Assembly: GCA_024704765.1 (NCBI GenBank)
Contig: JAKMXF010000307.1
Coordinates: 124,001 to 188,000, forward strand
DNA length: 64,000 nucleotides
Reading direction: 5' to 3'
Origin: Oopsacas minuta
Lineage: Eukaryota; Animalia; Porifera
Notes under the pieces: generated by a model
Seen by the model: the letters and a program-made list of their open reading frames with translations, nothing else
Database searches by the model: none
Told to the model about the DNA's origin: nothing
Translations under genes and position numbers: made by a program
Shown here: piece by piece, positions 23,312 to 60,557 of the stretch
Layout: every line of letters starts with the position of its first letter
Numbering within the stretch: the first letter of the stretch is position 1

Positions 23312-24524
23312 TACATTTCGAACTGGATTACTAAAATATCAAAGAATGGTTGGATAATATTAATTGGTAACAAATCGAGATTACTGCCAATAATTATGGG
23401 ATGAATTGTACCCGAAACATTACAACTCATCATCTCGAGTTTCATATGAGATTGATGGCTTAGTTCAAGGAATTTTGGTCTTTGAAGTTAAAAGAAATAC
23501 GAGGGGATTAGACTCCTCTGATGAAGTCGATGAATAATCGGAAAGGAAATTGGGAAGTAGGGGGGGAAGAGCGCTGAGCTTCAATTTTGATTTTAGGCAC
23601 GAACCTGATAGAATATGTCATCTCCTTGGGTGCTGTGTGAATCATTTCAACATCTTCCTGCTCATATAAGACATATACATTCAAGAAGTCAGCAATACCT
23701 TTTGGATGGAGAGTACGTATCTAAGATTGTTGAATTTCAGGTGGACCTTCAGGAGTTTAAATACCGGAACATGATATTCAAGAGTATACATACGCTAAAT
23801 CCAGGAGCAGACATTTCGGCATTGAAATAACTAAACCTAATTAAAACTAATTGGAAGATAGGTAATTGATAGTGTGTTTGCTCAAGGGGGGGTCCAAAAT
23901 GGCAGTGGAAAGGAATTGCCGAACAACAAAAGTAGGAAAGACAGAAAAACGCAGGTTGAAAACATAATCGGATAAGAACGGGATAGAATATATAGAAAAA
24001 TGAGTTAAAAGTTGATCAAAGTATTTTAGCTATGTGTAAATATAGTTAAATCAAATGCAAAGGTATAAGTTGGAATAATATCGTACACTGCATCTACACA
24101 GTAGCTGCTTTTCGAGGTAGATGGTAGGCCAAGTATAGGACGAGGCAATGAATTCAATATTTGGAGCTGATTGACCAATAAGTATTTTCAATACTCTCTA
24201 GCAAAATAGAATATGGTCTAAGACATATATACAAGTTAACCAAGTATCTAAAGTGAAAATTGGATACATTTACACATATTTAGCTTTTCTATATCCCCAA
24301 TATAAGACATAAATTATTTATGGCGAAGTCAATATGAAGAATTTCAATTTGAATTGTTTGGTTTTCATAGAAATAGTAATAGATAATAACAAATTGGTCG
24401 GAGTTGGGTGGGGCAGCAATAAATGCAAATTGGGAGAGCATTATGTGAAATTGACAATAAAATCATAAATTACCAGGGAACGCCTGGACACTTCGAGTTC
24501 ATTAATTAAGTTTTGAGTGAAATA

Positions 24525-25872
24525 CAATGTCCGTCAAAAAGAATTGCTCAAAATGAATATATACAGTATAGTAGATGCCAAATTGTATACATTGACCAGA
24601 TAGTTGAATTCTTGCGAAACCATACTCAACCATATGTATTTTGACAAGTAATACACCAACACTGCTAATCCACTTATTATACTTGCACAATTTACCAATT
24701 TCATTTTTGTATTCTTATTGCCAATTTATCCCTTTTAATCGAATTTTCAATGCCTTCGAAACCCCGAATTACCATTGAAAATCGGACCAACCTGATACTA
24801 CTTTCAGAAAGTAGCCATACTCAGAGGGAGGTAGCCAAAATGGTTGGATGTAGCAAAAAGTGTAGCCAAGATCTTTAAGAAACACAGACTGACTGGATCG
24901 GTAAGATACCTCGATTTTTTCCGAGTATGCCTCGTGTCAGAGCCAAAAGACAAGACAATTTATTGGTCAGAAAATGCAAAAAGAATTTATTTAAGACTGC
25001 TACTCAGATCAAAGCTGAAGTGTTATCAGAATATTCGATATAACTTTCTACTTCAACAGTCCAGAGATGGTTACGAGGGGCTGGACTATTTGGAAGAAAA
25101 CGCGAAAGAAGCCCCGCCTTACTACCAAGCACAAAAGAGACCGATTTTCCTTCATAAGATCGCACAAGAATTGGAATACTGAAGAATGGGCAAGAGTTGT
25201 GTTCAGTGACGAATCTAGGTTCCTTCTGTATACTAATGACAGGAGCCTACGTTAGGAGGATGAAGGGGAGGAGTTCTCAGAGAGGTGTCTTCAAAAAACT
25301 GGCAAGTTTGGTGGAGGTGGCATCATGGTTTTGGGATGCTTTTGCTGGAGTGGCGTAGGACTCTTGTGGAAAGTATCTAGGAACCTCACGACTAATTCCT
25401 GCAATGAGATATTGGAAAATGCACTATTCCCAAGCGTTGATTTGCATTCTCTACTCCTGGATGGACCTGTCAGCAAGACAACGCCCCATGCCAAAGGTCA
25501 AAGTGTACTAAGCAATAGTTTGGTGAGCAAAAAATAAAGGTATGAATTGGTCTGCTTAGTCACTTGATCTAAATCCGATTGAGAATCTTTGGCATCACAT
25601 TGCCCTCAGAATTCAAGAGAAAACCCCATCAAACTACAAAGAGTTGTGGAATTCCATATTAAGCACTTAGGACAGCATCGACATTAATAGGCTCCATACT
25701 CTAATTGAGAGTATTCCGCAAAGATGTAAAGCCGTAATTCAAGCAAGAGGAGGTTCTACTAAATACTAACGACAATTTTACTTGATTATAATAAAGCATT
25801 ATTGTTAAATCAGTCATAGAGATAAGAATTTGGGGTAAATTTATTCTGAGAAATTCTTATTGATCTGCACTG
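24525..25872 (+). mobile_element. Degenerate Tc1-like element
   Basis: TA TSD (24523-24 / 25873-74), degenerate TIRs, and VVFSDESRF, GGGIMVLGCF, DLNPIENLW fragments. The empty site is visible in the paralogous arm at ~31890. Confidence 0.8.
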
Positions 25873-28800
25873 TACCTAAATTAGTTTATCCGAACTAGAA
25901 AAAATGAAAAGTTAGTCATTGGATAAGTATAATTGCTGAGATAAAAGAAATTTTGTCATCGCAGTTGTGTTTTTATCTCAATAAATTTTGTGGAGATCAT
26001 GTTCATAAGTGAAAGAGTTATGAAAATATTCAAAGCCACAGTGGGTAGCTTCGGACAACCACATATCCCTAATATTTACATTGGTAGTATACACAAATGA
26101 TCTCCATTCAAGGGAAATGATGATTATACTTTCATCTTGTTACAATAGTTATTTCATCTATTGCTTTCGTGGGCGTGTGGTATTGGCATCACAGCTGAAA
26201 GGGGGGATTTGTATGAATCACAAAGAGTTATGTCTTTGCAGTACTGAACTACTAAGATAGGTCATAAATTAGCATCCAAAGTAGTATGGCCATCAGTTCT
26301 TGGAGGATATAATTTCCTTTACTCTTGTACTTTGGGATCAGCCAACAACAAATGCTCTATTGGGAACAATGAAAGGCATTAGATTTCTAACCAAATCCAT
26401 CAATTGATTTCTCTCATTGACTAACATAACTTGGAAGATGTGTAACATTCCCAGTCGAGGGAAAGACATGTGTCTATATGATCCTCGTTCAAAGGTTTCC
26501 TGCTTAAAGATGATTGTTTATGGTTTTTCCCAATTTCTTACCTTATTTCTGATAGTTTGGAAGAGTCATAGTTGTAGTGGTAGAACCAAAAAACTTAGTT
26601 GACTAACACTAGCAGCATAATTGCAGCATCTCAGGTTATACACAATTAGTCAACTATTTAACAAGCAGAGATTCGATTTGCTTACATTTGAAACGATTTC
26701 TATTAAAAAATTCTCTTAAAAACACTTTAGTGTTCACAGGAAATTTTCTGCATGTAATTTCAAATTATGTATCTGCCAAATACTTGAGTATGAACAAATA
26801 ATTATACACACAAACGTCATAAATTATACACAGCTTAAGTTAGCATATTTGGGCTCGGTAAAGGAATTTGTTAAGGCTTTTTTTGTGACAATGAACCTGA
26901 TAACCATGTAATTCTCTAAACAAGCCTGAACACTTAATCTTCTCTTCTCCAATAAAACATAATTTTACAGATAAATATAATTCAGCAGTCCTTTACTCTC
27001 CCTGCTGGATATGCTATACACATTAGTTGGAAATCCAAGCTTGACTCATAGAAAGCTATTTCGAATTCCACTCCTTTGATATTTATTTTGTGCCTTTTTT
27101 ACTCAGACACCGAGAGTTTCACCATGAGTTTGAAGATTCCGCGCCAAGCGTACAAAATATATCACTTTGGTAAGTTACCAATGATGGCATTACTTTGTTG
27201 AAGATCCTAAATAGAATGGAACAGAACAATCAACATAAGATACAATTTTTTGTTGGTATCAACAGAATACTTTGCATTCAACACTCAATTTCAATGATAT
27301 AATTTGAGAATGTGAATTTCTGGAGATTTAAGTGAGCTACACTCCCCTACCAGGAATATACGTTCGCCAAAAGTTCCATAGAAAATAGTATTATAATATG
27401 TCTGAATATATAAATGCAATGTAGTCAATTCTATAAGATACGGAGACATTAATTTCAGAATCGTATTCTAAGCATTAGAATTCAGCATAAAAGAAGGTTT
27501 CAACTCACTGAAATATTGCCTAAATTGAAAATTTCATTGTGTGTCACTATCTAAAACTTTTCCAATTGCCACCATGGACACAATGAAACAAGTGGCACAT
27601 GATGGAATGATTGCCAATTAGCGACATATCTAGTAGATATTTGAATAGAAAATTGTGTAATGGACATTTATACACTATTGGACAAAGGTGTTAACACAAT
27701 CAGTGTTGTCTTATCTTCTTCTTTATACACGACCATTTCTGCATAAAATGCAAGTTATTAGGTTACTGTAAGAATTAAGTTTTGTTGATTGCCATCAATT
27801 TGGAGAAGTCTTCATTATTTCAAAAATTTATACTTTTAATTAGCTTCCAGAAACTTATTCGAAAATGACCCAAACCAGAAAGATTCGATGAGATCTCTTC
27901 ATTCTATTTTCAAGGGTGGGTCTGTATTGGCGGAGGGATAGAGGGATACATCTCCCCTCCAAGAGTAATCTCCATGATATGACGTCATAGTTGGAAATTC
28001 ATGCCAATACATTGAATTATTGGCTCAAATTCCAAACCTTAAATTTCGGCTCGCATTGCTCGCATCTTTCCTTATAATTCGAGACTCGAAGGTACCTGAC
28101 AGTAGAATTACAAGGAATCTTGTGTGGCAAATAGGGGTTGTCGTTCTGCCCCTCGTGTAACCGTCATATTAACGAAAGCTTTACTGATCGTCATTAAATA
28201 GCGCCGAATAATTATTCTTCCTAAAGCTAGATAGCTATATCTATGATTATCTCATCAATCATTCTCCGGACAGCAGGTGGAATATGTATTGATCACAACA
28301 AAATCCCTGACAATTCGAGATTTCCCACTGTATAAGTAATTCACAGTCATGGAGTCGTCTCTAATTTTTCCAGTTCTCGAATTATCTGCTTCGAACACCA
28401 TTACTCACCAGTGGATAATTAGAGAGGATCCACTGTTTTGTAGTTTGACAATATTTAAATCCGTATGTTTTCATAGGATTAAATTCCGCCATGGATTATG
28501 AACTAGATATGATTTCAATTCTGGATGAGATGATTTCATGACTGGATTTGGATAAAGGATTCCGATCCGTCTTGGACCTCTGCATACAAATGCACACTGT
28601 GTGCAATAATTTTTGAAGATTTGAATCAATATTTAGTATGTGTGAATGGGAGAATTGGGAGTGGAACAAAAGTTATATGTAAATAAGTCGAATTATCAAT
28701 TACGTATATACATTTACAGTAAATCATGGATTTCGTTTTTGTTAACTTACAGGCATAGATCTCTATAATCAAATAGACAAGTGGCCAATTTGTACCTAAA

Positions 28801-30215: not shown

Positions 30216-32458
30216 CAACCATAAGCTAGGATTTTTAAAATGTGCTTACCCTTTGGAAATAAGGAATGTCTAGAGAAAATAACTCGATCTATAATAACAC
30301 GTTAGAAATTACACATCGCATTTTGATTTCAAAGATAAAGTACAAAATGATCCAAAAAAACTGTTCAAATAAGAAAGCTAGCAAGGAATGTGTATAGGAT
30401 AACCAGCAGGGAAAGGCAAGGACTGGCGAATTCTAGTTATTTACAAGAAATTGAGTTTTAGCGGAGAAGAGAAGATTATGATGTTCAGGTTTGCTTTGAG
30501 AACTACATGGTTACCAGGTTAAATACCACACAATAAATCCTTAACAAACTCCTTACCGTGCACAAATGTGCTAGTTTAAGCTGTGGATATTTTTATGACG
30601 TTTGAGTGTATAATTCTACGTTTATACTTAAGTATTTGGCAGTTACATATATATATAATTACATGCAGAAAGTTTCCTGTAGACAACAAAGTGTTTTTCA
30701 AGAGAACCGTTTCGAACCATCAGCGACCAAGTACAAACTTGGAAAGAGCACAAAACAATCATCTTTAAGCAGGAAACCTTTGAATGAGGATCATGTAGGC
30801 ACATCTCTCTCCCTTGACTAGGAATGTTACACATCTTCCAAATTATGTTAGTCAATGAGAGAAATCAATTGATGGATTTGGTTAGAAATCTTATGCCTTT
30901 CATTATTCCCAATAGAGCATTTGTTGTTGGCTGATCCCAAAGTACAAGAGTAAAGGAGACTATGTCTTCCAAGAACTGATGGCCATACTACATTGGATGC
31001 TAATTTATGACCTATCTTAGCTGTTGAGCACGGGAAGACTTGTAAATATTACATCTAGGGGCATTGCTCAATTATAGGGAAGAGATCATTTTCGTGAATT
31101 TCTATCCCATTGTTTTACCAAGGTATTTTGGCTACACTTCACTATATTAAGTGGGTCTAAGATCATGAAAACAGGTAGGATCTGTGGGTTTAGGCAAGTT
31201 AGCTGCAAATTTGCACCACCAGCTAGAGACATAAATGTACTCACCTTTAGTTGATAATTGTCTTTGCAGACACAAAGTCCCATTAGTTAATACAATAGTT
31301 CTCTATGTACATAAAGACTTACATTACTGCTGGGATTGAATAAGAAGATTTTACATTACAGTATGAAAGAAGTCTCACAAATTCTGAGCTATATGCTCAC
31401 GGGCTTGAAATGGATCAGCTATAAAGAAATTCTTTCTGGATGTGTTGAATCGGAAAAGGGAGGAGGATCAGAAGATATTACCTTAATATCATTCTAATCT
31501 GCCTTTAAGTGAACTTCGTGCACCTATAGGGGAACATGTTTCTTAAGGCCATATTTCTCCTTGGGTTGGGCCCCCGTCCTCAAAACAAAAATTGTTGGAT
31601 ACATGGTGGTGCAGAACAACTATTGTAACAAGATGAAAGTATAATCATCATTCCCTTGAATGGAGATCATTTGTGTATACTACCAACGTAAATATTGGGG
31701 ATATGTGGTTGTCCGAAACCGCCCACTGTGGCTTTGAATATTTTCATAACTCTTTCACTTATGAACATGATTTTCACAAATTTATTGAGGATATATACAC
31801 AATTACGATAACCAAATTTCTTTTATTTCAGCAATTATACTTATCTAATGACGAGCTTTTTATTGTGTCTAGTTTGGATAAACTAGTTTAGATATTTCAC
31901 TCAAAACTTTGTTAATGAACTCGAAGTGCCCAGGCGTTGCCTGGTAATTTGTGATTTTATTGGCAATTTCACATAATGCTCTCTCAATTAGCATTTATTG
32001 CTACCCCACCCAACTCCGACCAATTTGGTATTATTACTTACTATGACTATGAAAAACCAAACATTTCAAAATCAAAATTCTTCAAATAGGTTTCAGTGAT
32101 AAATAATGTATATTTAAACTATGAACGATATTGAAAAGCTTAGCCGTGTCTATAATATTTCATCGAATATAAAGTAGTGTTTGTGCCATCATTTATAGTC
32201 ATATAACATTCATATTTCCCGTGTCTAGAGGATGCCTGGTATATCTCATGGAGGGCCTAGGAATAGAAGGCTGCGACCCACTATAATACTTTTCAAAAGA
32301 TTATATCTAGGTAGCTCGTATTCTTTTGAATTGAGGAGGCAATCCTGAATTTCAAAAGAGAGGTCTATGCTCTCTTAGGGAAAAGGTAGGACACCCTTGA
32401 CGGGACCTACCCAAACCTTTGACACTAGGGATAAAAGAGGGTCAAAATTAAAACTAAC

Positions 32459-34910: not shown

Positions 34911-37110
34911 AAGTTTAGCTTAGAAAAGTTTAAGCAAGAAATTATACATTAATATCAGAAGAACAAAAGAAAGATCTAAATTCACAATTACCGAATACGT
35001 TCATCAAATAATCCTACACTTTTCAAATTGTACTTTCACCATAAGGATGGATCAAAACTTTACTAGAGGAATGTTTAAAAACGTATATACTTGAAAAATA
35101 TATACCTCAATCTTTCATTCAACAGAGGTGAATAAAGTAAATTAGATCATACATGATTTTGGCCAAAGCACGAGTATTCTGAATGTATTGTATTTTACAC
35201 CATTAACCTCTCGAATGTATGTATGTATTCTACATAAGAAGTTGGAAACCAAATCTTAAATTAAATTATAATACATTGAACATTTAGAGATTCGAATTTT
35301 TCACTCATGAATCTACAACTTCATATCTATGATTCACATTGGCACTTATAATTGAAATATCTACAATCACCCTTGTATTGCATATAACCCTACATATAAC
35401 CATCATCTCTCATTTCTATGCTGTGTCTTCAATTTCCTTTCTTTGTTCTACCGTGACTCCTGAAGTAACTGACCATATCACATTTCCTAGCTAATCTAAA
35501 TTTCTACATTATAAACCATGATGCATATATTATACAAATTTAACTCTTCAGATTCCAAAGAAATCACAAAATCCTGATCAAATCATTTAAAATCTTGTCA
35601 AATTACCAATCATATCATTTCAAACCCAAGTCTATCAACCTTCACGGTCCCTTCGAAAATTAATTCTTATTGATACATCTGATTGTCAAAGTTACAAGGT
35701 TGAGAGCCCTTCAAATCGTCATTAAATCCTTTCAATACTAATTCATGAATGATTGGACTTGATTTCTATTCCCCGCTACTCACTCCTTAAGTTATCAAAT
35801 TTACCACTCTCCAAAAAGCAAACTAAACAGTTAAAGAATTCTAGATGGCCTATGACAGTGATTCCCAACTGGCGGACAGCGGTCCCGATCCGGACCTTTT
35901 TTCAATTTAGTCAGGACAGCAAGCTTGGGGTGGATTAATCCAAACTCCTTTCAAAATTCTGGCTATTTACCAAATATATTCTATATATTTACTCTTCGAG
36001 AAATGTTTCGCCAAACATATTATATATACTATTTCATTTAAATAGATACTAAACTCACACTGATTACACTGCTTGACAAAAATATTGTTCCATTTCTACC
36101 AACACTTGTCTTTACCTAATTTTGGGGCACTGAATCCGAATCCGAGCATAATTTTTTCCGCAAGTTCTAGATTTTTTGCAAATGGAAATTTTTAATGATT
36201 TTGCACAAAATTCAAATTTTTTGAAAAAGTGACATGATTTGACAAAATGTTGTTCTGCTTGCAGTTGAATAACTAGCCTCAATACAAGAATAAGTGCCAA
36301 AAGACTTTTATGTTGCCAATAGAAATTGTATTTGTAGATAGGCAACAATGTTTAGAAAATGTAAAAATTAACAGTTTTGCTTGTAATATGCATGCAAAAA
36401 TTGATTTTTTTTACAAAGTGACATAGAAAAGAACGATAGCAATCTACAAAAGTAACTTAAAGCGATTAATGACAAGATGCAAAAGATTCAAATTTTCTAC
36501 AACTCTGGGCAAAATATCCTCTTATAACTTCTGCGTTTGTACGCTTTGTGAAGACAGTCACGTTTAATGCCCCAACAATAGTCTGCCATCATATCGACCT
36601 CGGTAGCTTTCATCCACTGTCATGAGATCCTGGTGGAAACGCTCTCCCTGTTCGCCACTGACAGCCCTAAGGTCTTCAGGGAATTTGTCCAGGTGGCTGT
36701 ACAGAAAATGTACTTTTATGCTCATGTTGCATCCTAAATCACGAAACCCTAAGAGCATCTTGGATAGAAGCATTTCTGTTACCAAGAAAGTTCTGTATAA
36801 CATCCGCAACAGATAGTCATGCAGCTTCCTTCTTGACATTCATTTATTGAATGAAGTTTTTGACGAGAATAGGTGTATGTATCTGTGGTCCATCAAACAC
36901 TCCTGCTTTGATTTCATCATATGACAAAGCAGGGAAAGTATACACACGATGATGAAAGGATTCATTGTCAGGATTTAGGGCTTCAACGAACTGTTTCATG
37001 AGAACTAGCTTGATGTGCAGGGGCGGAAAAACAATTTGTCTCTGCTTACGATCGGGTCTTGTGTTCGTTAGGCATGCCAGCTTGAAATGTTTCACGTAAG
37101 GGCTACTCCT

Positions 37111-40100
37111 CACAGTGGTTTAGAAGCAAAGAATAGACAAAAAATTGATTCCGTATTTGATGGTTTCTTTTCATTTTATATTGTTTAAATGATTCTCATT
37201 TAAAATATCTAAGCGATTGAGAACCTAGAAGCTGTGAAATTTCTTTATCAAAGATGCAAAATATTTATAGGAAAATTGCGGCTACATGATCTCCAAATTT
37301 AGTCACAATTTCAAATGAACCTGTAAGAGCAATTACATAATTGAATGTTACTAATCTGGTATACTTTATATATTTCGACTATGCTAATTCTAAATATCTT
37401 GTTTCCATGACCGTATCTTGTATATATTTCGTGAACATAAGATTTCTAAAATCTAGTAAAATCCATACAGAATTTTTACAAAGAGGAATACTTAAAGTGT
37501 CAGGAAAAATAAACAACACAAAACAACAGCGCAAAATGAATCGAATACACGCATTACGATTCCTAAAAACGTAATCTACAACCACAAAACCCGAAACAGT
37601 GCGCAACCTATAATTTTCAATGACATTCCATTACAACTTTTCGTTGCTAGGAAATTCTCATTGTAGCATACTGCAACAATGGAATGAAATAGTATTGAAT
37701 TTCGTTCTTGAAATTTATTATAGTGACTTATATATATAATCTACTGAATAATACAACATATTTTTCGGAATTTCTTGAAAACAATGACAGAAAATTTAAC
37801 TTTCCCAAAGTTCCGCCTCGAATTGGCAAGGATCCTGAAAGACAATAATAATTGTATCTTGAAAACGACAAAATATTTCAAAGAACACTTTGAAATAGAC
37901 TCTGATAATACGAAACTCTTGGAAACGTTGCTGTTAAGAATTCGGGACAGATTCAAGAAGGCGAAGAGATCTTTAGATTGTTTAGAAGGAGAATGGTGGC
38001 ATTCTAACATTTCCATGAAACCTGAGTTAAAGAAAAATCGTGTTTCTGATTTACTAGAGTCGTCTTCTGATGATGGTGAAGTTCCCATTCATTCAGTGAG
38101 TCATAGAAAGCATCTTGATGATCTCTCTCTGCAACAACAGCGCACTCGATTGTCAAGCCTGCTAGAATGCATTAAATCACTCTCAGTTATTGAGAATACT
38201 ACATAAATAAGCATTGCAGCGCTCTCATTACAACTATTGGCACATGAGGAGAATAATCGTCAGGTTGCTACGGTAGCCAAAGAGATTATTGTCAGTGGAG
38301 GATTCTGTAACCTCAGTAGCAAGCATGTTCCAGTTGATAAAGCCTTATTCCTGCTGGATTTACTTGAAGTGGGCAGACGAAAATGCACTCAACTACGTCA
38401 AACACTTCCACCAGACAATATACATTTCCCATCCTACAGCAAGCTAGCTAATCTGAGAGATGTCATGATTTCGCGATCCAGTATAACTTTATATCCTAAT
38501 CCAGCTAAACCAATAGGTATACACGCACCATATTGTTTTCAAGTTCAGAAAACCCTGGAAAGAATATTATCAATGGTAGATCGCCCCACAAGTGAAGAAT
38601 TCCCATTCACATTTAAAATCGTAGATGGCTTAGATGGTTCTGGTTGTCACACTATCTACAACCAGCAGACAACTAATACTTTCACCAAAAACTTCATTCT
38701 GTTTTGTTTCAAGCCCATCTCCATCCACACTGTAACAAACAGGATTGTTTGGCAGAATAAATCCCCTAATTCATCCTTCTCTCAAAAGACCTATTTTTCT
38801 CTGCGCTGCAACAGAATGCGAAGAAAATATCCGTTCCTTCATGGAGACTATGATTAATCCCGATACAGCGATGTTGCAAAATGGGATTCCTTTAGAAAAT
38901 GGTGTTGTTAATGTCGATATTATCCGCTCAATGTTTGATGGGAAGATGGCAGCCATTCCCTCTGGAGCTGGAGGAGCCAGTTGTCAGATGTGCACTGCCA
39001 CACATAAAAATTTGAAGGACCGGAATTTAGTTCTTGAAGGGGTTCCCCATCAACAGAAATATCACAGATGCAATCGAGTTATTTTCGCACATTGATGACA
39101 TTGAGTCATTCTTTGCTCTTTCGACTAATGAACGCTACTATTTAACTCATCAACCAATTTCAGAGATTAACATACATCCAGCATCTCCACTTCATTCATA
39201 CACAGGCGTATTTAGGTAAGTAATCTAGTACTCCATTAATCATTCAGAATTTGTCTTCACATAAATAAACCAATTTTAGGTCGTTCAATTTGCTGGTATA
39301 TCATCTTCGCATCGAAAAGTTTACCTGGTCCCCAACTTCACCAATTATCAAGGAGTCAATGAAATTCCTTCAAACATTTATTCAGGAGAAGACAGGATTA
39401 AAGGTTGACCAGCCTAATTCTAGCGGTGGAACCACCTCAACAGGGAATGTTGCTAGAATAGCCTTTTCTGATGAAACTGAATACCTTGAATGCATTCTAT
39501 CAACTGTAGCAATACAATATCGCCCAATCTTATCAAAGATACATACTCAGCTTTCAGCCATTCTTCGGGTTTTTAATTCAAGTCACAAGGTCAACACTTT
39601 GGAATTGGGGAAGTGGTGCAAGGATACCTACCTTGTCATCTTAGATTCTTCCCCATGGGCTACCATGACTCCAACCCTGCACAAGCTCTTGGCCCATTCC
39701 GAGGAGTTAATACGTGAGTCGAATTCTATCTATGGCTTAAAGGCATTATCAGAAGAAGGCACAGAATCATGCAACAAATTAGTTAGAAAATATCGGAAGA
39801 ATTTAGCTCGTAAAATTAGTTTTGAGACCAATATTATGAATATTTTCGTTAGATTAACTTCTCAAAGTGATCCAACCTTAGTAAACTATCGAAAAATTTG
39901 ACTTGTGAACGATGTGGTCAATCTGGACACACAACGAGATCTAAATGCTGCAATGCTATGAACAATCAAAAAACTAGCATACAGACTTTATTCACGACTT
40001 TAACCTCCAATACAGATTGCCTATCATGAATTTAAGTATAAATATAATGTATATTTTGTAAATCAATAAGATAAATTCCATCATAAGTGTGATGTCATAA

Positions 40101-40420
40101 TTCTGAAGACGTCATAACTCTATAAATACAAGCCCTACAACAAAATTTTAAGTTCAAGGTGATTGCCAAATACGGATCACTCATATGTAATCAATAGATT
40201 TCATGTCGATAAAGTCGAGTAAAATGTATTTATTGAAGAAAATTAAAAATTTCACATATATCAATGACGTTATAACTTGGAAATTTTAGGCCATATACTT
40301 GTTATGACAAGCTGTATTGGTTCCTTATATATAATAATCTATATGTAAATAATACATTTCATATGGCTATCTCACACCAAAATAGCTATTCTTTACTAAC
40401 TGCCCTATTAAACCACTGTG
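37111..40420 (+). mobile_element. RAG1-like (Transib/RAG1L-type) DNA transposon, copy C, family 2, complete ends
   Basis: ctcct|CACAGTGGTTTA ... TAAACCACTGTG|ctcct, giving a 12-bp TIR with the RSS heptamer and a perfect 5-bp TSD (37106-37110 / 40421-40425). Confidence 0.93.
37775..40029 (+). pseudogene. RAG1-core-like transposase with NBD-like region, one intron and a CxxC-GH-C C-terminal tail (copy C), a few frameshifts/stops
   Basis: RKHLDDLSLQQQRTRL (NBD-like), KIVDGLDGSG (D, 38633), RSMFDGKM (D, 38937), ASCQMCTAT, SPLHSY, TMTPTLHKLLAH, LSEEGTESCNKLVRKYRKNLARK (E, 39764). Intron 39216-39279. Tail TCERCGQSGHTTRSKCC at 39901-39951. Confidence 0.9.
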
Positions 40421-43400
40421 CTCCTTCTGTGTCCAATGTTTTTCACATGCTCTGCTGTCCCGCATGCACAGATAACATGGAAATTTAATGTATCCTTTTT
40501 GCTGACCTAGCAAAAAACTAACCATTTTGAGGTCAACAGAAATGATCCAGTTGTGATCATGATATCCGAGTAAATTCATAACAATTCTAATGTAATCATG
40601 CTGTTCCTTCAAGATAGTGGAGTGACCAACTGGAACAGCTCCATAAATATTTCCATTGTGTAGAATAACACACTTGAGGCTGCGCTTGGAACTTTCCAAA
40701 AACAATCTCCATTCCCCTGGATCATATGAGGAGATACCCAGTTGTCCGAGAAGACCAGGAATATCGTTGCAATATGCCAGCTTATTTTCCATGAAAAATA
40801 GGGTAGAAGTTCTTCTCTTTTTCGAAAAAAGGAAACCTTTACAGTTCGATCCAGCAACTGTTTTTCTTTGAGCGTGGAGGCTAAGAGCTCAACTGCTTGT
40901 TTGGGCAGATCTAAATCACGTACTAAGTCATTCAGTTCTGATTGATTAAACTGCTGGACAGTTACTCTAGTTTCACAAGAAGGATCTTCAGATTCTGATT
41001 CTGTATCTATTTTTGATATTCCATTTCTACGATCTCTTCCCTTTCCAATTCAGTTTCTTCATCATCAGGAAAAGCAAAACCACTAAAAACCGGAGGAGGA
41101 AGTCTATCAGAGTGCGGGACAGGTCGTATAGCTGATGGTATACTAGGATGAGAAAGCGTTTGTCGGCTCTTCTTGCCAACACCTTTTGCATTGACCATGC
41201 AAAAGTAGCAGCCAGTCGTGTGGTCTTGGGGTTCACACCACAACCATCGGAATGGCAAAAGGCAGACCCTTCCGCTTTCCCTTTGTCCAGTCTCGGAGCA
41301 TTTCTTAGCAGTTATGGCACACAATATGAGGAGGCCTTTTCTTATCTTGATCACCAAGAGTGATATCAAAGTATGCTATGTAGGCACGCTTCACAAATGA
41401 TGTTATATTTCGTCTTTGATGCGAAAGTGTGTCCACACCACAGATGTAACAAAATGAACCAGGGCATTTTGCATTTATGTCTACTAGAAGAAACCATGAT
41501 TAAATCTGAAGAGTTAAGAATCGAAATAAAGTCCTTTGATGCTATGTAACTTAACACAAACAAACTGAATAACAAAACCTTGGTTCTAATTAGGCTACCA
41601 GCAGACGAGCGGAAAAATAAAGCTTAAATGCATATTCTGCTGCATCTATCCACAACACTTCACTACAATCAAGTTTTCTAACTTTGTACTATTTCTTGTA
41701 TCTCGTGGAGTGACTAACTGCGAATGAATAACGAAATGGTCAACAGGCGTTAAAGGAGGTGGATAATAAAACAGGAATGCAGTATGGTGATAAAACTTGA
41801 TAACGTGGGGCTTTCAACAGAAAGCTTTGGGCTGATAAGCACAACTCATTGCGAACTTCTTCAAATGCGCTTAAATAGCAATCGACTACAACATGAAAGG
41901 TTCTATCTGAGACACTGTACCATGTTATAGACAAAACACAAACAAATAGCCTTAACTTTGAAAACCAGTTGAATAATCAGGCCTGCAAAATACTCATTTA
42001 GCACGTGCTCATCATTCAGCTATGACTAACAAATGTTCACAATGAATCCAGATGATGTATACAAAAAGAAAAATGGCTTGATAGATAAAAATGTATTTGG
42101 TGGAGATCAGATTTATGTACTAAATAAGCACCACAAACGAAAAAATTCAAATTGTCGAATGCACAATCCTAATGCATGCAGAAAGAAACTGATTGCAGAT
42201 TTGAAATCAGCATCCCAAATTATATAGAATCAGTTAAAAATCTCATGAGACAAAAAATGAAAAAAATGATGAGCAGTGTTATATTTCATTAGTTATTATT
42301 CCAATAGTTACTGAGATTTACGTACTTTTAGCATTAGATTCATAGTAAGAAACTTAGTAATATATTGCAGTATCATAGGAGTGATTAATTCAAGGAAATT
42401 ACATATTGTGGACCGGTGATCCTTTTTGTATAAATATATGGACCTTGACTGAAATCCTTTGGAAATCTATGCCCTATAGACTCTACAATTCCAATAGTTC
42501 AATTGATACCTCCTAGATCTATATATTTCGAGATAATGATGATTCCTGAATTTGTTGACTCAAAAACTGACGAGATGCCAGAAGTAGATGACTTGAAGAT
42601 AATGATGTCCTTAGAATGTTTGGAACTATATTTCACTCATATATATCATAAATTTATGATAAGTAACAATGAAATATTCTTGATAATTGTCGATTTTAGG
42701 AGACGAAATAGTTTGCTGATATGTTGTGTAATTATAAAATTGTTACTGAATTAAATTGGCTAATAGAATCACAGAAAAAATACATTGCGTAACCACTTTT
42801 GAGTATGCATTCTCAATTACAGATGGAACTTATCATATTAACTCAATAATATCTAAGCAATTTTTCAGATTTTGCATAAAAAGTACACGCATGTATAATT
42901 GATTAAGCTATAGATATCCATCAAAATTTTCCAAAAATAAATTCCAGAAATTCAAAAAGTATATTTTGAAAAACGTGCAGGACAAAAAAAAAGTATTATT
43001 CCACCCCAGCAACGAACATAACAGAGGATAATCCATGGAAAAACTAAATCTAAACAAATTCGCAAACTTGATTCTGGGGATACAAGTGGAAATTCAGTGC
43101 AGCAAAGTCGATTATTGACACCGAACAATCTTCCGATGAAGAAATAGTTCTCGAAGTATCACCTATAGAACCAACTAGTTCGCCATCAACTGATTGTTGC
43201 ATTTTCAGAAAAGGCACAAAAGAAAACCGCCTGCCCGGCGACTGCAAGCTTGGAAATATCAGATTGTTTGTATATACATCAGATATTTTGATATTTAAAT
43301 ACAATATTGTTAGGAATGAAATTTATCATATAAACACTATAATAATATGTTGTGTTTAACTTATCCTGAAATCACCTATGTATTACCACATTCGATGAAT

Positions 43401-44214
43401 TTAATGGACTAAATAAGCAGCATTTAGAAAATCTCGTCTTCGAGTAAAGACGGCTAAAATTTTAATAACTCTAAATTTATAGGTTAACCATTAATGAGCA
43501 GCAGCGTTAGTCTTTGCAAGCCTATTACCCACTTTGAAATGAACAAATCCGAATGTTTAGATAATTTTCTCTCCTCCAGTAGACGATCTAATAGCGCAAA
43601 CTACTAAATATTCTAATTAAATGGGAAACTTACAGGTAACAGATCTCTAGTTACAAAACATGATAAACATAGGGTTTTTGTATTAGTAGAAACATAGGTT
43701 GCTATAAATTCACTATTAGCAACATACATATTTGATAACTAAGTTTATATTGCCTAATGTCAAGACATAATATTTAGATTTAGATATATTTTAACGAATA
43801 TTACATGATTTATCTTAGTAGTCTTTCTCTAATTCTCTTACAACTATCCCAAAGTTTAGACTAAATCAATGACTATACACTATGCATATTCAAACACAAG
43901 TGCACAATAAAAAGTAATCAGGCAACTGTAAGTACTGAACCCTGGCGGATCCATCATTTTCGTTATAGCTAAGGAAAAGAACATCAATATTTTGTTTGCA
44001 TTTTCAAGAACAGAAAGCACATATGAACTAACATCGATATTTAGATACCATAATCATGTAATTCTAAGAAACCTTGACACCATAGTTTTGCTCAAGTCCA
44101 ATTTAGTATTCATGGTTGTAGCTTGGAAAAAGTGAAATTAGAGTTCCAAAAAATATAAAGAAATCGTGAAAAATTTTGTAGGTAGTTGAATTTCCACCAA
44201 GGAATTCCATAGTA

Positions 44215-45522
44215 CAGTGTGGCTCCAAAGTTCTGATACAAACAATTTTGTCTATAATATTTTTTCAGCATGACCTACATTATTGATTTTCTATATATAA
44301 TTAATACATACTATTAGGAAGATATTGCATAGTCATTTATTCAATATAACCACCCTTTTGGAAATGACAGGCTTGAGTCTGTTTGGGAATCCTTCTACTG
44401 CGGCACACAGAGTTTCTTGGGGTATCTTCTCCTATTCTCGAAACAAGGAAATCTTTAGAGAACTAACTGTGTTGTGTGACACAGAACAAGCCTTGATTTC
44501 CAAGATAGACCATACAGAATAGTCCATAGGATTTAAATCTGGATTGTATGGTGGCCATTCATCCTTGTGTACAAATTGGGAGTACTGTGCTTCATCCAAT
44601 CTTGGGTCGCATTGGCCGTATGGGTGGGAGCACCATCTTGTTGGAAGAAAAATAGCTGTCCAGAAAACATGGTCTGACTCAGACCATTTACCACAGACTC
44701 TAGTACAAGCTCTCGGTATGTTTTGGCACTGATTTTCACTTCTGGGTAATGAAAATCAGTGGTGTCCGGCCAACAGCGGAGGCCCCAGGCCAAACCATAA
44801 CCACAGCGATTTCTTGATCCGACTGATACATCCGAACTTATCGGGGATCGCTGAAACTGAGGTCGAGATGACTCTGTCGTTTTGGCTATTTGTAGCCTCT
44901 TCAATGGTGAAAATTTTCTCATCTGTGAACAGGATATTTTCGAGAAACCCAATAGCGTGTGGCGCAAGTAGGCTCTTGCTCCGGGATACTCTCTTTTCTT
45001 TCACCGACCCAGATAGGAATTGTACCTTTTTGCGTTTAAAAGAGCGCATTCCTAGGTCCCTTCTGACAACCCTTTGTATTGCTCGGCGAGATATATTGAG
45101 CTTCCAAGGCCATTTTCTTCATCGGACGGTGTGGGTTCCGCGGAAACCGTTCTCGCACCCCTTTCTTGAGACCTGGGTCGTTACAGATCATGGACGACAA
45201 GATCTCTGCTTGTCTACAGCGTCCCTAGTTTCCATATATCGATCTATCGTTCTGGAGATAAATGCCCTACGTCCTTTTGCAATATTCAGCAGTTTGAAAA
45301 TTTCAGATGGACTTTTCCTCGCTACATGCAACTCAATAATTGCTTACCTCTCAGACTCCATGGTCAATCACAATTTTTTTCGAAATAGAATACACCAAAT
45401 TGAAATAATATTCGTTAGGAAGCGTATAAGGTATGTCATGGAAGAGCAAACCATCGAGAATAATTCCTGATAATGGTTGTATATTAATCGTGATTTTGTA
45501 TCAGAACTTTGGAGCTACCCTG
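44215..45522 (-). mobile_element. maT-type (DD37D) element, degenerate; same family as 52727-54039
   Basis: TA|cagtgtggctccaaagttctgatacaaa ... tttgtatcagaactttggagctaccctg|CA. Contains LFTDEK, QQDGAP and WPPYNPDLNPMDY fragments. Confidence 0.9.
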
Positions 45523-48402: not shown

Positions 48403-51188
48403 CAGTGGCGTCGTGCTTGGAAATTTTCTGGGGGGGTACAGAGTCAATAATAAATCCCAAAAGAGTTATAAATATCATAATAAAAGTACTCGAACTCTCT
48501 TTGGTTCAAACTATATTTCAAGTAATCTATGGAAAATACTATTATATCTGTAAATTAGTGTTCATATGTTCAGTACTGATATACACTATTTCCTGGGAGT
48601 ATTCCAAAATCTCTCGTGAATCTTCTCAAATGTTTTAGGGATTGAATTCATTCTGTTAGATTCAACGGACAATAACAGTAAATTACTTAACCTGTCTTCA
48701 CACATCGTGCTACGTAATCGAGTCTTAATAAGCTTTAATGTTGAAAAGAACGTTCACATGCGGAGGATGTCACTGGTAGTGTTAGAATCAACCTATATAG
48801 AATGTTCAAATTGGGATATAATTTGGCTATCCCTTCTTTGACCATATAAAGATAAAGTTTATGAATTCCAATTTTCCCGATATTGGATAATTCAATTAAT
48901 TTCGCAAGAAGTTTGTATTCATATTCTATTAAATCTGCGTCGAAGTCGCCAATATAATAACTTGCTAGTACTCTTAAATCCTGTATATTTTCAGCTTTAG
49001 GAGGATTTAAGCATTCAATAGATTTGAGAAGAGGCATGGTTTCATGTGAGAATCTACTCTGAAGCGCTTCTTTAATCAACTCTATCACATCATTAAAGAA
49101 TTGCTCTTTCATACGCTCTTTTCCAGTTAACACTATTGGTACATGGTGTTCACTATCATCCAACCTTGTAGGTACCTTCCTGTGACGTGGTTCACTATAT
49201 GTGACGCCAATATTCTCAGCAATTTTTTCAGCTTGTAAATATAATTGATCAAAGTATGCTTCAGTTGTATATCCTTGTAATGTACTAATCAAAGATTCAA
49301 TATGTAGACTTGCTGATGATATGTTAAGATCTTCATTTTGAAGATATTTTGAAATGATATTACACAATTTGAGGATATCTGTAAAGGTAACTAAACATAG
49401 ACAAAATTGGAAATCTATACATTTTGATAGAGAGAAAGCATCTGACGCTATACCAGAATCATATTTACCGTCGTATATAATAGAATCTAGAACTTTTAGA
49501 AGAACACTAATATTTTCAAGCAAAACTTGGCATGCCTCTGCACGGGAAGACCATCTAGTATCGCTTAGTGATTTAAGTGTGCCTATTTTCTTCCCTTCAC
49601 CCTGACTGGCATAGCATTTCATCTGAATATCTTTAAATAACCCATGTCTCTTTGTGCTACCCTCAATAAATGCGTACAGCTTTTGCATTATTCCAAAGAA
49701 ATTTCTAGTGATCACATTGCGTTTACAAGTATCAATAATAACTAGGTTTAACCGATGCGCATAACAATGTACAAAATATGCTTTAGGGTTCTTTACTTTA
49801 ATTAAATTTTGGACTCCATTATATCTACCAGCCATTGTTGCACATCCATCATAACCTTGACCACGTAATGATTCGATCAATAATCCGTGCTTACTGAAAA
49901 CTTCAACAATGGTTGTCACTAACCCTACAGCTGTACAATTCGCCACTTCAATCAAGTCAAGTAGAGATTCAATTATTTCACCATTTATATTGACATATCT
50001 TACTACAATAGATAATTGATCTTTCTTAGCTATATCTGGAGTAGTATCTAAACAAATTGAAAAAAAGTGAGCTATTTGAATATTTTCAATAATATCTTCC
50101 CTCAAGATTTCGGCACTATACTGAATCATTTCATTCTGAGAAGTAGGTGATAAATAACTGGGATAACCTTTTGGATTTGCTTGTCCTTTTTGTAGATGAA
50201 TCATTAAAGGTGGGTGATAACGAGAAATAAGTTCGACAATTCCCTTGAAAACACCTTTATTCGCAGACACTTCTCCTTCATTATGACCACGAAAAGGCAA
50301 GTTCAATTGAGCTAATGTAATAACTACACCAATCAGGAGATAAACAATATCTTTTCTTGATTGCCTTTCTTTATTCGCAAGAGATAATGCTTTCTTCATA
50401 TCTTCGCTGATGAGGACATCTACTGGAGTTTCATGTAAATAACTAGTCCATTTTTCCATGCACATGGAATGATTTTCACTTTTTGAATGTTTATCGAATC
50501 CCCTATTTTTCTCTAACGCATGTGGCCACTGTCTAAAACCATCTTCCACAAATGTTCTATCATATTTATTTAATGCAGAACCGAAAACACGACAGGGAAA
50601 GCACAAAGCCGAATCATTATACTTATTATACTCCAACCAGGGTCTTGAAATATACCAGTTTGCCTGAAAAGCCCTCATTTTCCCATGAAATAATGTCTGA
50701 GGGTATGAGTTATTTGGTAGTTTCAGTCGTATAGGTCCATATTTGATGTATTCAGCACGAAGTAATCTGTCTACTGGAATTACAAATTCTTGTCCCATAG
50801 CATCGTTCAACAACGATGCATTCACAAACGAAGTCTCAGATTCTATAGAACTATTAGTGACTACTGCATCTGTAGAAGTATCACTTGATTGAATAATTGG
50901 AAGAGAACATGGTGACAAAGGGTGAAAATATTTATCCAAATTCATTGACGAACAAAAGATAATAACTATATACGAAAGTTAGGAAAAAGAATCAAATAAT
51001 GTTCTAAATTGATATATAAAACAAAAAATTAAGGGTTGGCCTATGTACATGATGTAACTATCAGTAGTATGCATCAAGACCAAAAGCGAAAAGCATTAGT
51101 CGATTCGGAGAAATAAACTATCTGGAGGCGGCTCATGAAATTTGGGGGGGCCCTGGCCCCCCCGGGCCCATAGAGCACGACGCCACTG
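48403..51188 (-). mobile_element. hAT DNA transposon (ZMYM1/TTF-zinc-finger, DUF4371-type), nearly intact
   Basis: cgcgttac|CAGTGGCGTCGTGCT ... AGCACGACGCCACTG|cgcgttac: perfect 15-bp TIR and perfect 8-bp TSD. Confidence 0.95.
48586..50945 (-). CDS. hAT transposase; 736-aa ORF 48735-50945, with the hATC dimerization domain completed only after a 1-nt frameshift correction
   Basis: WYISRPWLEY..ALCFPCRVF, CLDTTPDIAKKDQLS, GQGYDGCATMAG, HCYAHRLNL, DTRWS, SSACERSF. The shifted frame continues STLKLIKTRLRSTMCEDRLSNLLLLSVE to a stop at 48586-48588. Confidence 0.88.
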
Positions 51189-52726: not shown

Positions 52727-54039
52727 CAGGGTGGCTCCAAAGTTCTGATACAAAATCATGATTAATATACAACCATTATCAGGAAGTATTCTCAATGGTT
52801 TGCTCTCCCATGACATACCTTATACGCTTCCTAACAAATATTATTTCAATTTAGTGTATTCTATTTCGAAAAAAATTGTGATTGACCATGGAATCTGAGA
52901 GGTCAGCAATTATTGAGTTGCATATGGCGGGGAAAAGTCCATCAGAAATTTTGAAACTGCTGAATATTGCAAAAAGGACGTAGGGCATTTATCTACAGGA
53001 CGATAAATCGATATAAGGAAACTGGGAACACTGTAGACAAGCCGAGATCTGGTCGTCCATGCTCTGTAACGACCTCAGCTCTCAAGAAAGTGGTGCGAGA
53101 ACGGATTCGGCGGAACCCAGACCATTCGATGAGGAAAATGGCCTTGGAGCTCAATATATCTCGCCGAGCAATACAAAAGGTTGTCAAAAGGGACCTAGGA
53201 ATGCGCTCTTTTAAACGCAAAAAGGTACAATTCCTATCTGGGTCGGTGAAAGAAAAGAGAGTGTCCCGGAGCAAGAGCCTACTTGCTCTACACGCTATTG
53301 GAGTTCTCGAAAATACCATTTTCTCAGATGAGAAATTTTTCACCATTGAAGAGGCTACAAATAGCCAAAACAACAGAGTCATCTCGACCTCAGTTTCAGC
53401 GATCCCTGATAAGTTCAGATATATCAGTCGGATGAAGACACCACTGTCGGTGATGGTTTGGGCTGAGGTCTCTGCTGTTGGTCGGAAACCACTGATTTTC
53501 ATCCCCCCAGGAGTGAAAATCAATGCCAAAACATACCAAGAGCTTGTATTAGAGCCTGTGGTAAAAGGTCTGAGCCAGACCATGTTTTCTGGACAGCAAT
53601 TTGTCTTCCAACAAGATGGTGCTCCCGCCCATACGGCCAATACGACCCAAGATTGGCTGAAGCACAATATTCCCAATTTTATACATAAGGATGAATGGCC
53701 ACCATACAGTCCCGATTTAAATCCCATGGACTATTCTGTATGGTATATCTTGGAAAACAAGGCTTGTTCTGTGTCACACAACACAGTTAGTTCTCTAAAG
53801 ATTTCCTTGTGTCGAGAATGGGAGAAGATGCCCCAAGAAACTCTGCGTGCCGCAGTAGAAGGATTCCCGAACAGACTCAGGGCTGTCATTTCCAAAAAGG
53901 GTGGTTATATTGAATAAATGACTAGGCAATCTCTTCCTAATAGTATGTATTAATTATATATAGAGAATCAATAATGTAGGTCATGCTGAATAAATATTAT
54001 AGACAAAATGGTTTGTATCAGAACTTTGGAGCCACCCTG
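52727..54039 (+). mobile_element. maT-type (DD37D) element, near-intact
   Basis: Perfect TIRs cagggtggctccaaagttctgatacaaa / tttgtatcagaactttggagccaccctg. Flanked by a 12-bp duplication rather than TA only. Confidence 0.93.
52888..53917 (+). CDS. DD37D transposase; true start ATG 52888, one extra A near 52973 shifts the frame (open ORF 52967-53917)
   Basis: IFSDEK, QQDGAPAH, WPPYSPDLNPMDY with 37-aa spacing. The 44215-45522 copy reads gcaaaaggacg where this copy reads gcaaaaaggacg. Confidence 0.85.
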
Positions 54040-57000
54040 TATGAAATAAAACAGTGGGATTAAGGAACCCCTAAATAATTCTATACCACTGGGCTGGAAA
54101 AGTTACGAGAATGATGAAAACGATGTATACAGTTAAAGGGGGAATTTATCGAAACATTTGATAATCAATTATGATCAGTATAGGTTTACTATTTGAATTA
54201 TGAAAACAAAGTCTCATTGTTTATTGAACATTCATTGCATTACATTAAGAAGTCTAATTGTTGTGAATCTTGTTAAGGCCATTTAACTTCAGATAAACCT
54301 CTCAAAGTTAACAATGATATCGGATCCCAGTATACTTTGATAGACTTAGTGGATAGAGGCTCTCTCAAATATCTTCCGGCATGTTGTGAAATGTGTGAGT
54401 ATTTTATATGAACCTTTAATCAAATTGAGAAGCATTCTTTGTTATTTTCTTTTAGATTACGGTATTCAACTATTACTGCATGCCTTGCTGACTAGTGGAG
54501 AGAGTGGGAGAACGAAGAGCCGTACAATACAGTGGAACCTCCCGAATCGGGGGACCGAATCTTGGGGGCTCAACCTTCCCACTTTGCAGGTTTCACTGTA
54601 ATGAATTATTATCATTTTTATCTTGATTTATTGAGATATCTCTTTATCTAGTACTGTATTGTGAGTAATGGATTGTGGCTCTACTATTAAAGTATTAAAA
54701 TATGATAATTATAATTGGGGTGGGAGGTTATAGTAAATCATTACAATATAACAAATGTCACATTAGAACACTTTAGAATAGCGTTGAAAGGCATTATAAC
54801 ATTATTTGAAATTTTGAAAGTCCAGGGTAATTGCTATCCATGGTCCAGAAATTTAATAGAGTGCAACTGCCTCAGTGTAGAGAATGCTATGTTTATTTCT
54901 AACAAAATAATCGAGAATTAAATCATGAAATAGGTAGAGCTGAATCTTCATAAGTACATACCTACTTCTAGAGTTTGAATAAACGCCCCCACGATTATTA
55001 CAATCCCCCATCTATTCAATTTCAAAATTGACTCCACAAGTTTTAAATCATCAATCGCATCATTACTGCATATTTCAGGATCGTGAACTATTTATACAAT
55101 CATTCGGCTGGACGATAACTCTGTAAATTTGAAATCGAATAAAGTGGTTTTAGCCTTGTGTTTTCGAAAATAAATTGTAATCAAAAGCTACGCGAAATAC
55201 TGAATTAAACAAATAGTATACTATTAAAACTTTACACGATTCAAGAAGCATTTTACTGAATACACAAAAATATATCGAACAATTCGGTTTCAAGTTGCAA
55301 ACTAGATTAAAAACCAAAATAATGGGAATGTCACATCATTATTGCTGTTGCAGTCAAAGTGCATTTCTAGAAGCGGGATCTGACGAGTCCGGCACATTGT
55401 GACAATACTTCAGGCAATCGTTATTATTGAATACATAATTCAGTGGAAGTGCGTTGACATAGTTTTGTAAAGAAGAATTGCACATACAAAGATCAAATAC
55501 CAGAGGGAGACGTTAGTGGAAATATATAAATAGCGGAAGGGTTCTTCGCTGAAACTCGAATACTGAGCAAAATACTCTGGAACAACATTCAGGGCTTCTC
55601 ATTCACTAATCAAAGGAAAATACACTCGATAACCCGAATAGGCCTTAAAATAGACCAGAACGTAACCTACGTTAAAAAAGGCCTATGCACCACCTTTGTA
55701 AATTTGGACCATAGATTAAAGGAAGGCTATTGTTAAAACTTTATTGGGTCAGATATGATATTGAATATATGTTCAATGAGTGAGAAATGATATTGAAAAA
55801 TAAATACATATTATTATGAAAACACTGAGGTAGGAAATACAATACAAATCTGAGTAGGTAAATTAAGAATGTTAATAACAGGTATAAGTAGTACAATGGT
55901 ACTTAACAAGTATATAGTTGCAAATGTACAACCTAAATCTACTAACAGCGTTCCCCAACTTCCTCCATTCAAGTACATTGAAATTTCATCAATTTCCTGG
56001 TATTTTCACAATGAAATTCATGTATAGAATTCATGTTCTTTATTAAATTAGAGAGGAAGCAGATAGTGGCTAATCTGATTAACTTTCTAGGATATCCCAA
56101 CCAACTGTATCACAAATTGGACAGCTACCCCTTCAGCTTTCACTGTCCTCTTCTTCAATGATTTTGGCTTAATTTTCACAATATATTACCCGGATGGTCC
56201 CTTAACAATATCTTTAAAAGTGAAGGGCGATCTCCAATCGATGTACAAATCTTCCATCAGGAAACAATTACTTCGAATCACAAGTATGGCCATTTCAGTG
56301 AATTTCGATCAAATGACTGCAAGAGTGTGTAAGATGATTCGAGTCATTCTCCAATTTCCCTTACTTTAGCTTCGGGGATAAAAGTTAAACAGGCTTAACA
56401 ACGATTTGATTTCTTAAAGTAAGAATGAATTATGTACCCAGCAATAAATGCAGCTGCTTGAAGTATTTATATAGTACGAGGGCCGTCCAAAAGATTTTTA
56501 GAATGAATGTTGTAACTTCATTTCTTGCACACCAATACATATTATATCTATAGTACACTATTAATAACTACTCTAGTTGAAATATCTAAGCTTTTTATCT
56601 GTTATTACTTTTTTGACAGCTACTTATATAGTCAACATTTGTCTCTAATTTTAAATTCGTACCGAAATATTTCGCATGGATTTATAGTTGAAAAGGAGAG
56701 ACTTTCGCGCAATGATACTATAGGACTTTATGAGAAAACTCAGTCCTAAAGAATCACATATTCAACTTCAGGACACATTTGGAGAAAAATCACTATCTTT
56801 GGCTACAGTGCACAACTGGAACGGTGAATTTAACCGTGGACGAAAGACTCTGAGTGATGAGATGCGATCAGGACGTCGTGCAGATGCGGTTAACGCAGAA
56901 AGTATCCAGAAAGTTAAGAAAATAATCAAAAATGAGCGTTGAATCATAATAGACGAAACAATGAGTCATTTAGACATCAGCAGAGGAAGCCTCCATACCA

Positions 57001-60400: not shown

Positions 60401-60557
60401 TTAGAAACACATAACAAAGTTGTGCATAGTTAGGATTCCTAACTGCTACTAATGCTGGCAATGATATTTTCTTACTAATTGAACTATGGAGAATTCGAAG
60501 AATGCATTGAAATATGTTTTTTTTAATATGTCAATTTCCCCATATTGTCACACTGTG
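57464..60557 (-). mobile_element. RAG1-like (Transib/RAG1L-type) DNA transposon, copy B, family 1 (paralogue of A), complete ends
   Basis: caggg|CACAGTGTGGCGAAATGG ... CATATTGTCACACTGTG|caagg: RSS heptamer at both ends and a 5-bp TSD with one mismatch. Collinear with A along its whole length. Confidence 0.92.
57790..59903 (-). pseudogene. RAG1-core-like transposase, frameshifted (copy B)
   Basis: ORF pieces 59068-59706 (NBD/DDBD-like), 58620-58973 (RFLFDTKMAGLLDGAGVPSCHLCTAT) and 57897-58184 (SITPSLHKLLAH...LPEECLESCNKFVRRYR). The lower (3') boundary at 57790 is approximate. Confidence 0.88.

Follow-up and report, generated by a model that had tools for sequence, protein, structure and literature searches.

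The 64,000-nucleotide window analysed here, from contig JAKMXF010000307.1 of the glass sponge Oopsacas minuta (positions 124,001–188,000), contains three transposable elements of 3.1–3.3 kb, A (2100–5202, plus strand, 3103 bp), B (57464–60557, minus strand, 3094 bp) and C (37111–40420, plus strand), each with a transposase frame of about 2.2 kb. All six termini, read inward, open with the heptamer CACAGTG, and the elements are flanked by target-site duplications (TSDs) of 5 bp, AATGG/AATGG for A, CAGGG/CAAGG for B and CTCCT/CTCCT for C. Past the heptamer lies a 9-mer box that is identical, or nearly so, at both ends of each element, 10 nt away at the end upstream of the open reading frame (ORF) and 19 nt away at the downstream end. 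We consider the three elements to be, very probably, decayed single-gene Transib copies from two families, with bipartite and asymmetric terminal inverted repeats (TIRs) of a kind that has already been described.

The sequences and positions of the heptamers and 9-mers reported in a first-pass annotation of this DNA proved correct at all six termini. In element A, the boxes are AGGAAATAG at the 5' end (2117–2125, plus) and GGGAAATAG at the 3' end (5168–5176, minus); in B, they are GGGAAATTG (60532–60540, minus; 10-nt spacer) and TGGAAATAG (57490–57498, plus; 19-nt spacer). Element C begins after the left TSD copy CTCCT (37106–37110) with the 5' heptamer (37111–37117, plus), a 10-nt spacer (37118–37127, plus) whose first five nucleotides, GTTTA, are shared with the 3' end, and the box AAAGAATAG (37128–37136, plus). 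At its other end, the box AAAGAATAG (40386–40394, minus) is followed by a 19-nt spacer (40395–40413, minus), the 3' heptamer (40414–40420, minus) and the right TSD copy CTCCT (40421–40425). A single 9-nt gap aligns the two ends of each element, the first five nucleotides past the heptamer being common to both, and the similarity ceases directly past the box. At 91% identity from end to end, A and B represent copies of a single family. Between A and C, DNA similarity is confined to one stretch of 65 nt, and their translated pieces are 35–52% identical; the window thus samples two independent families and not six independent ends.

The ORFs are broken in all three elements. In C, the frame of the Transib (RAG1-core-like) transposase spans 37748–39898 on the plus strand in at least five pieces separated by frameshifts and stops, and includes the candidate catalytic motifs DGLDGSG (38624–38644, plus), MFDGKM (38931–38948, plus) and SEEGTESCNK (39749–39778, plus). 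The C-terminal piece of 210 amino acids matched the HzTransib structure 6PQN from Helicoverpa zea (E = 6.6e-13), the amphioxus RAG1L protein BbRAG1L (1.2e-5) and vertebrate RAG1 (approximately 5e-4), and all of these alignments span the SEEGxExxNK motif holding the catalytic glutamate. Pfam recognised one of eight ORF pieces, as RAG1 (E = 5.9e-6), and a search of a representative library gave 1,521 homologues, mostly fragments. The central piece of C (216 amino acids) found no match on its own among PDB sequences, the exact look-up of one window-encoded piece returned nothing on record, and an Rfam scan of the window gave no match. With a RAG1-core-like transposase bearing DDE motifs, TIRs that begin with a CAC heptamer, a single gene and 5-bp TSDs, the three elements are, by sequence, members of the Transib superfamily. 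They differ from RAGL elements of the ProtoRAG type, which hold a RAG2-like kelch gene within the TIRs: they are too small and have no second gene, as no other coding-strand ORF of at least 80 amino acids was found outside the transposase frame in A, B or C, in a survey of ORFs that included no kelch-directed search.

The boundaries of element C were examined with contigs from four public sequencing runs of one sample, placed on positions 36900–40650. In three of the runs we found a joint connecting 37105 to 40421 with five ambiguous letters, corresponding to element-free flanks that carry CTCCT once; the 5-nt overlap at this empty site agrees with the TSD copies seen in the sequence. Loose ends with flanks of low agreement were found exactly at 37111 and 40420, and we take these to represent many other copies with different neighbours. 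Read depth in the flanks of C (36900–37110 and 40421–40650) was 5- to 100-fold higher than in the element itself, and C therefore lies within a highly abundant repeat. Insertion-free copies of this repeat provide the empty sites; the repeat itself has no Pfam or Rfam match. At three single-base indels, 38784, 39039 and 39896, most or all contigs of other C-family copies differ from the window copy. This suggests that some frameshifts are private to the copy in the window, and family C may have intact members.

We collected relatives, defined as loci encoding homologues of the C transposase, from Oopsacas minuta and two other assemblies. Of those used below, L006 and L011 belong to the Oopsacas minuta assembly GCA_024704765.1 (PMC10542158) and L009 to another assembly; contigs L001, L002, L004 and L005 each offered at most one usable element end and gave no end pairs. 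The L006 copy is 93% identical to C and has the TSD TAATA and ends with 10- and 18-nt spacers. L011 represents an O. minuta family other than C and carries, within a perfect TSD (TATAG), the box TGGAAATAG 10 and 20 nt past its heptamers; L009 shows the 10/19 layout within the perfect TSD CCTTG. Lone ends with the box at the expected offsets were found at the 5' side in L001 and L010 and at the 3' side in L006b and L007. The asymmetry noted at first in A, B and C thus recurs across families, as 10/18, 10/19 and 10/20, and the TSDs of the relatives are perfect.

The AT-rich composition of the ends raises the question of whether the boxes could be chance matches beside a common CACAGTG word. The heptamer occurs 10 times in the window against an expectation of 4.9, a number reached in 4 of 100 shuffles and not significant. 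A box match of eight out of nine at some pair of offsets is seen in about a quarter of shuffles of two AT-rich ends of one element, and the matches of A, B, L006a and L009 are not significant when taken singly. The perfect match in C, by comparison, was reached in 23 of 2,000 shuffles and that in L011 in 3 of 2,000. As single elements gave such weak results, we tested the offsets across families: a leave-one-family-out matrix scan covering 43 offsets ranked the box first at the predicted offset (±1 nt) for 7 of 12 ends and second for another. The signal beyond chance comes from the recurring offsets and not from the matches of single elements. Chance also leaves unaccounted for the perfect 5-bp TSDs, the empty-site reads, the copies ending at the heptamers, the RAG1-like ORFs between each pair of ends and the same offsets in independent families; we consider it refuted by the read data, the offsets in the relatives and the matrix scan, and give it practically no credence. 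Four other CACAGTG words in the window, at 11254, 26037, 28601 and 31730, were considered as element ends and rejected, as they have no box.

While the bipartite 10/19 ends of A, B and C were thus borne out by the sequence, the TSDs and the reads, the first-pass annotation had gone further and proposed that they constitute a distinct and undescribed code. It had also named beforehand the comparison with published Transib and RAGL TIRs as one that could overturn this proposal, and that comparison does so, since the architecture is already documented (PMC1131882, PMC8355894, PMC9435367). Kapitonov and Jurka (2005) reported several Transib families with 5' ends resembling the 12-spacer recombination signal sequence (RSS12) and 3' ends resembling RSS23, and argued that the 12/23 rule could be derived from Transib structure (PMC1131882). 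Asymmetric Transib TIRs were also the basis of a hypothesis put forward by Yakovenko et al. (2021) (PMC8355894). Tao et al. (2022) described asymmetric TIRs, a CTT1 tail and an equivalent of the nonamer-binding domain (NBD) in all Subgroup I Transibs (PMC9435367), and according to Martin et al. (2023) asymmetric TIRs, an NBD with GRPR/K and a zinc-knuckle tail are all known in Transibs (PMC10462144). The same geometry is seen in AanRAGL from Aureococcus anophagefferens, whose ends consist of elements of 13 and 10 bp set 4 or 13 bp apart, the second element lying 10 nt (5') and 19 nt (3') past the heptamer in the supplementary alignment (PMC9435367). The sponge elements are therefore a new example of a known end design and not a new code.

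The likeness to each of the known systems is partial. Transib5, Transib2_AG and TransibN1-3_AG from insects (PMC1131882) similarly have a single gene, 5-bp TSDs and a heptamer with an inner block, short at the 5' and long at the 3' end, but their reported spacers are about 12 and 23 nt, thus differing by 11, and their nonamer is A-rich, whereas the sponge elements have spacers of 10 and 18–20 nt (a difference of 8–10) and a box of the GGAAATAG type. AanRAGL has the same 10/19 geometry from the heptamer and 5-bp TSDs, but it contains a RAG2-like gene, is GC-rich and has the heptamer CACACCC and another inner box. Compared by features and not by phylogeny, the sponge families have the asymmetric TIR pair of Subgroup I Transibs. 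MleTransib_2823 of Mnemiopsis leidyi (PMC9435367), a member of that subgroup, shares the CACAGTG heptamer, bipartite asymmetric TIRs and an NBD-equivalent region, and has a CTT1 zinc knuckle as family C does, but in the alignment of Tao et al. its long end (about 19 nt) is the 5' one and its short end (about 8 nt) the 3' one, with a difference of about 11. PflRAGL-A of Ptychodera flava (PMC10462144) resembles the sponge elements in the heptamer, the conserved region adjacent to it, the 10-bp spacer asymmetry, the AT-rich inner element and the presence of an NBD, and has a C-terminal zinc knuckle as family C does; it differs in being a two-gene RAGL element and in having an intact GRPR/K, the sponge clade having no GRP. 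The RSSs of V(D)J recombination share the identical heptamer and the presence of two signal classes about one helical turn apart. They differ in their spacers of 12 ± 1 and 23 ± 1 nt, in the A-rich nonamer ACAAAAACC in place of the sponge box, (A/T/G)GGAAATAG or AAAGAATAG, in their requirement for RAG2 and in a pairing rule proven by experiment. The O. minuta genome paper makes no mention of Transib, and we found no searchable paper tying Transib to glass sponges, so that the host lineage may be new.

A profile built from the N-terminal regions of the clade and its intact relatives matched zebrafish RAG1 (E = 4e-7), mouse RAG1 (approximately 2e-5) and the isolated NBD structure 3GNA (6e-4), and the basic motif of the clade and the helix following it align to the NBD segment of RAG1. 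The alignments and profile matches place the RAG1 NBD-homologous segment at 38099–38203 (plus) in element C and the NBD-like segment of B at 59467–59571 (minus). A profile made of sponge sequences only, comprising five pieces of which two are from the window, had 3GNA as its top match in the PDB. We conclude from these matches to RAG1 and 3GNA that the transposases contain a domain homologous to the NBD, as the first-pass annotation had supposed. At the other end of the protein, element C has a zinc knuckle, CX2CX3GHX5C (39904–39948, plus), resembling the CTT1/CTT* tail found in RAG1L proteins. The O. minuta copy with 93% identity to C has the knuckle in frame, and many full-length relatives carry it as well; in amphioxus RAG1L, the zinc-knuckle tail clamps the bases adjacent to the heptamer (PMC10462144).

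End anatomy, TSDs, cut-and-paste footprints and protein-domain homology were all observed, and by analogy with the known systems they suggest how the ends might work. Each end consists of the CACAGTG cleavage heptamer, about five family-specific bases common to both ends, and the inner 9-bp box, placed 10 nt from the heptamer at the 5' and 18–20 nt at the 3' end, a difference of roughly one helical turn (9–10 bp). A transposase dimer would cut at both heptamers, with the catalytic core and the tail holding the heptamer and the adjacent common bases, as in RAG and amphioxus RAGL. The NBD-homologous N-terminal domain, as a dimer, would be the putative reader of both inner boxes, and with the one-turn difference both boxes would point to one side of the helix, yet the left and right ends could still be told apart.

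Several observations weigh against this picture of boxes, spacers and NBD-like reader. The match of the sponge-only profile to 3GNA is marginal (E = 0.044), and the GRPR that contacts the minor groove in RAG1 is not kept in the sponge clade, which has SHRK in C, SRRH in B and IRKP and similar in relatives. For the solved HzTransib chains, alignment to the clade profile starts at chain residue 9 and lies wholly downstream of the NBD-like segment; the NBD-like region is therefore present in no solved Transib chain, and the proposed recognition of the box has no structural precedent in Transib. The zinc knuckle was not found in family A/B, where the tail has decayed. Among the ends themselves, the box of L009 has diverged from those of other families, its own two ends matching at seven of nine positions, and L003 (2290–5372), which is related to C and has a normal 3' end and a perfect 5-bp TSD, shows no recognisable box at +10 in its 5' end and is an exception to the 10/19 layout. 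Finally, the long 3' spacer is not free sequence, and to regard it as no more than a spacer may be an oversimplification: AAATGG followed by C or G is present, exactly 5 nt past the heptamer, at the 3' ends of A (AAATGGC, 5184–5190, minus), B (AAATGGC, 57476–57482, plus), L003, L006b, L007 and L009. This motif may be the only new detail of the elements, as we found no description of it in the text of the literature, figures aside.

The 3' motif raises the possibility that the ends are asymmetric by content, AAATGG(C/G) being bound by a second contact of the transposase or by a host bending protein. The occurrence of the exact AAATGG at one offset in A/B, in the C clade (L003, L006b and L007) and in L009, although the families bearing it are only about 45% identical in protein, speaks for such a role, and partial motifs are found in C (ATAGGGC, 40402–40408, minus) and L011 (TTTTGGG). 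The same partial motifs can be read as degeneration, however, and the motif is absent in L004; published asymmetric TIRs such as those of AanRAGL have no such common motif, and the distance between box and heptamer is itself tightly kept, at 10 nt (5') and 18–20 nt (3'). We regard asymmetry by content as a tentative explanation that is somewhat unlikely to be correct, and it and the explanation by spacer length are not mutually exclusive.

The L003 exception bears on another explanation, in which the 9-bp difference has no function and is an old indel in one end that all descendant families inherited. It would be tolerated since nothing but the heptamer and its neighbouring bases would count, an idea put forward for the tail-dependent RAGL-B. 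Martin et al. (2020) argued that invertebrate RAGL enzymes depend mainly on the terminal 15–17 bp and are insensitive to asymmetry; L003 has transposed with a 5' end without a box, and family C has the tail zinc knuckle that would permit such a mode. Neutral sequence would nevertheless be expected to diverge, and here the box is matched between the two ends in each family while the sequence just beyond it is unrelated, and at least four families with otherwise saturated DNA retain the offsets. We therefore think it improbable that the difference is without function. The L003 exception and the published view that enzymes with the tail are little affected by asymmetry still call for caution about an obligatory pairing of short and long ends. 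That a sponge Transib without RAG2 would enforce the pairing of a short (10) with a long (19 ± 1) end through an NBD dimer, with the 3'-only AAATGG(C/G) as an additional site of recognition or bending, is in our judgement an unlikely, though not far-fetched, reading of these data.

Other features were seen on the upstream side of the elements. An A-tract lies just inside the 5' box in C (37137–37145, ACAAAAAAT) and also in the 5' ends of B, L009, L010 and L001; in element C, ACAAAAAAT begins 19 nt past the heptamer, much like an RSS nonamer. The position of the tract shifts between about 20 and 29 nt among families and the 3' ends are without it, and it might belong to a promoter or serve as an additional binding site. 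The 5' end of L003 resembles the start of a 3'-type end (GTTTAGGGCAG...). Some 480–500 nt inside the elements, and still upstream of their main ORF, lies a short frame, RPAGGRPKYQTFI in L011 (3890–3935) and FPGLPKATEKYITSFI in A (approximately 2575–2630), with a counterpart in B at approximately 60030–60085. This stretch looks conserved and contains an AT-hook-like GRPK; it may be an exon upstream of the main ORF, or else a non-coding block under conservation. The GGRPK in the upstream frame of L011 was considered as the true AT-hook of the NBD and rejected, as the alignment of the main frame to RAG1 puts the NBD elsewhere.

Elsewhere in the window, an uninterrupted ORF of 736 amino acids (48735–50945, minus) encodes a hAT-type transposase with DUF4371 and the hAT dimerisation domain, and is flanked by two inverted 1.3-kb copies of a Tc1/mariner-like DDE_3 element (44213–45522 and 52727–54041) that are approximately 91–95% identical. 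A palindrome of the perfect-hairpin type (272 nt; 461–1004) surrounds a run of N (629–841) and is probably an assembly artefact. Another pair of long inverted repeats (24352–26562 and 30710–32065) is 88–89% identical.

Where the 12/23 rule came from is still an unsettled matter in the history of V(D)J recombination. In the published view, RAG2 was captured only after asymmetric ends, an NBD-like domain and the C-terminal zinc knuckle were in place, and the sponge elements leave this picture unchanged while adding to it a well-bounded set of several families with footprints of recent mobility. If a RAG2-less transposase did enforce the pairing of short and long ends in these sponges, whose lineage is among the earliest to branch off within the animals, a working rule like 12/23 would be older than RAG2 capture.

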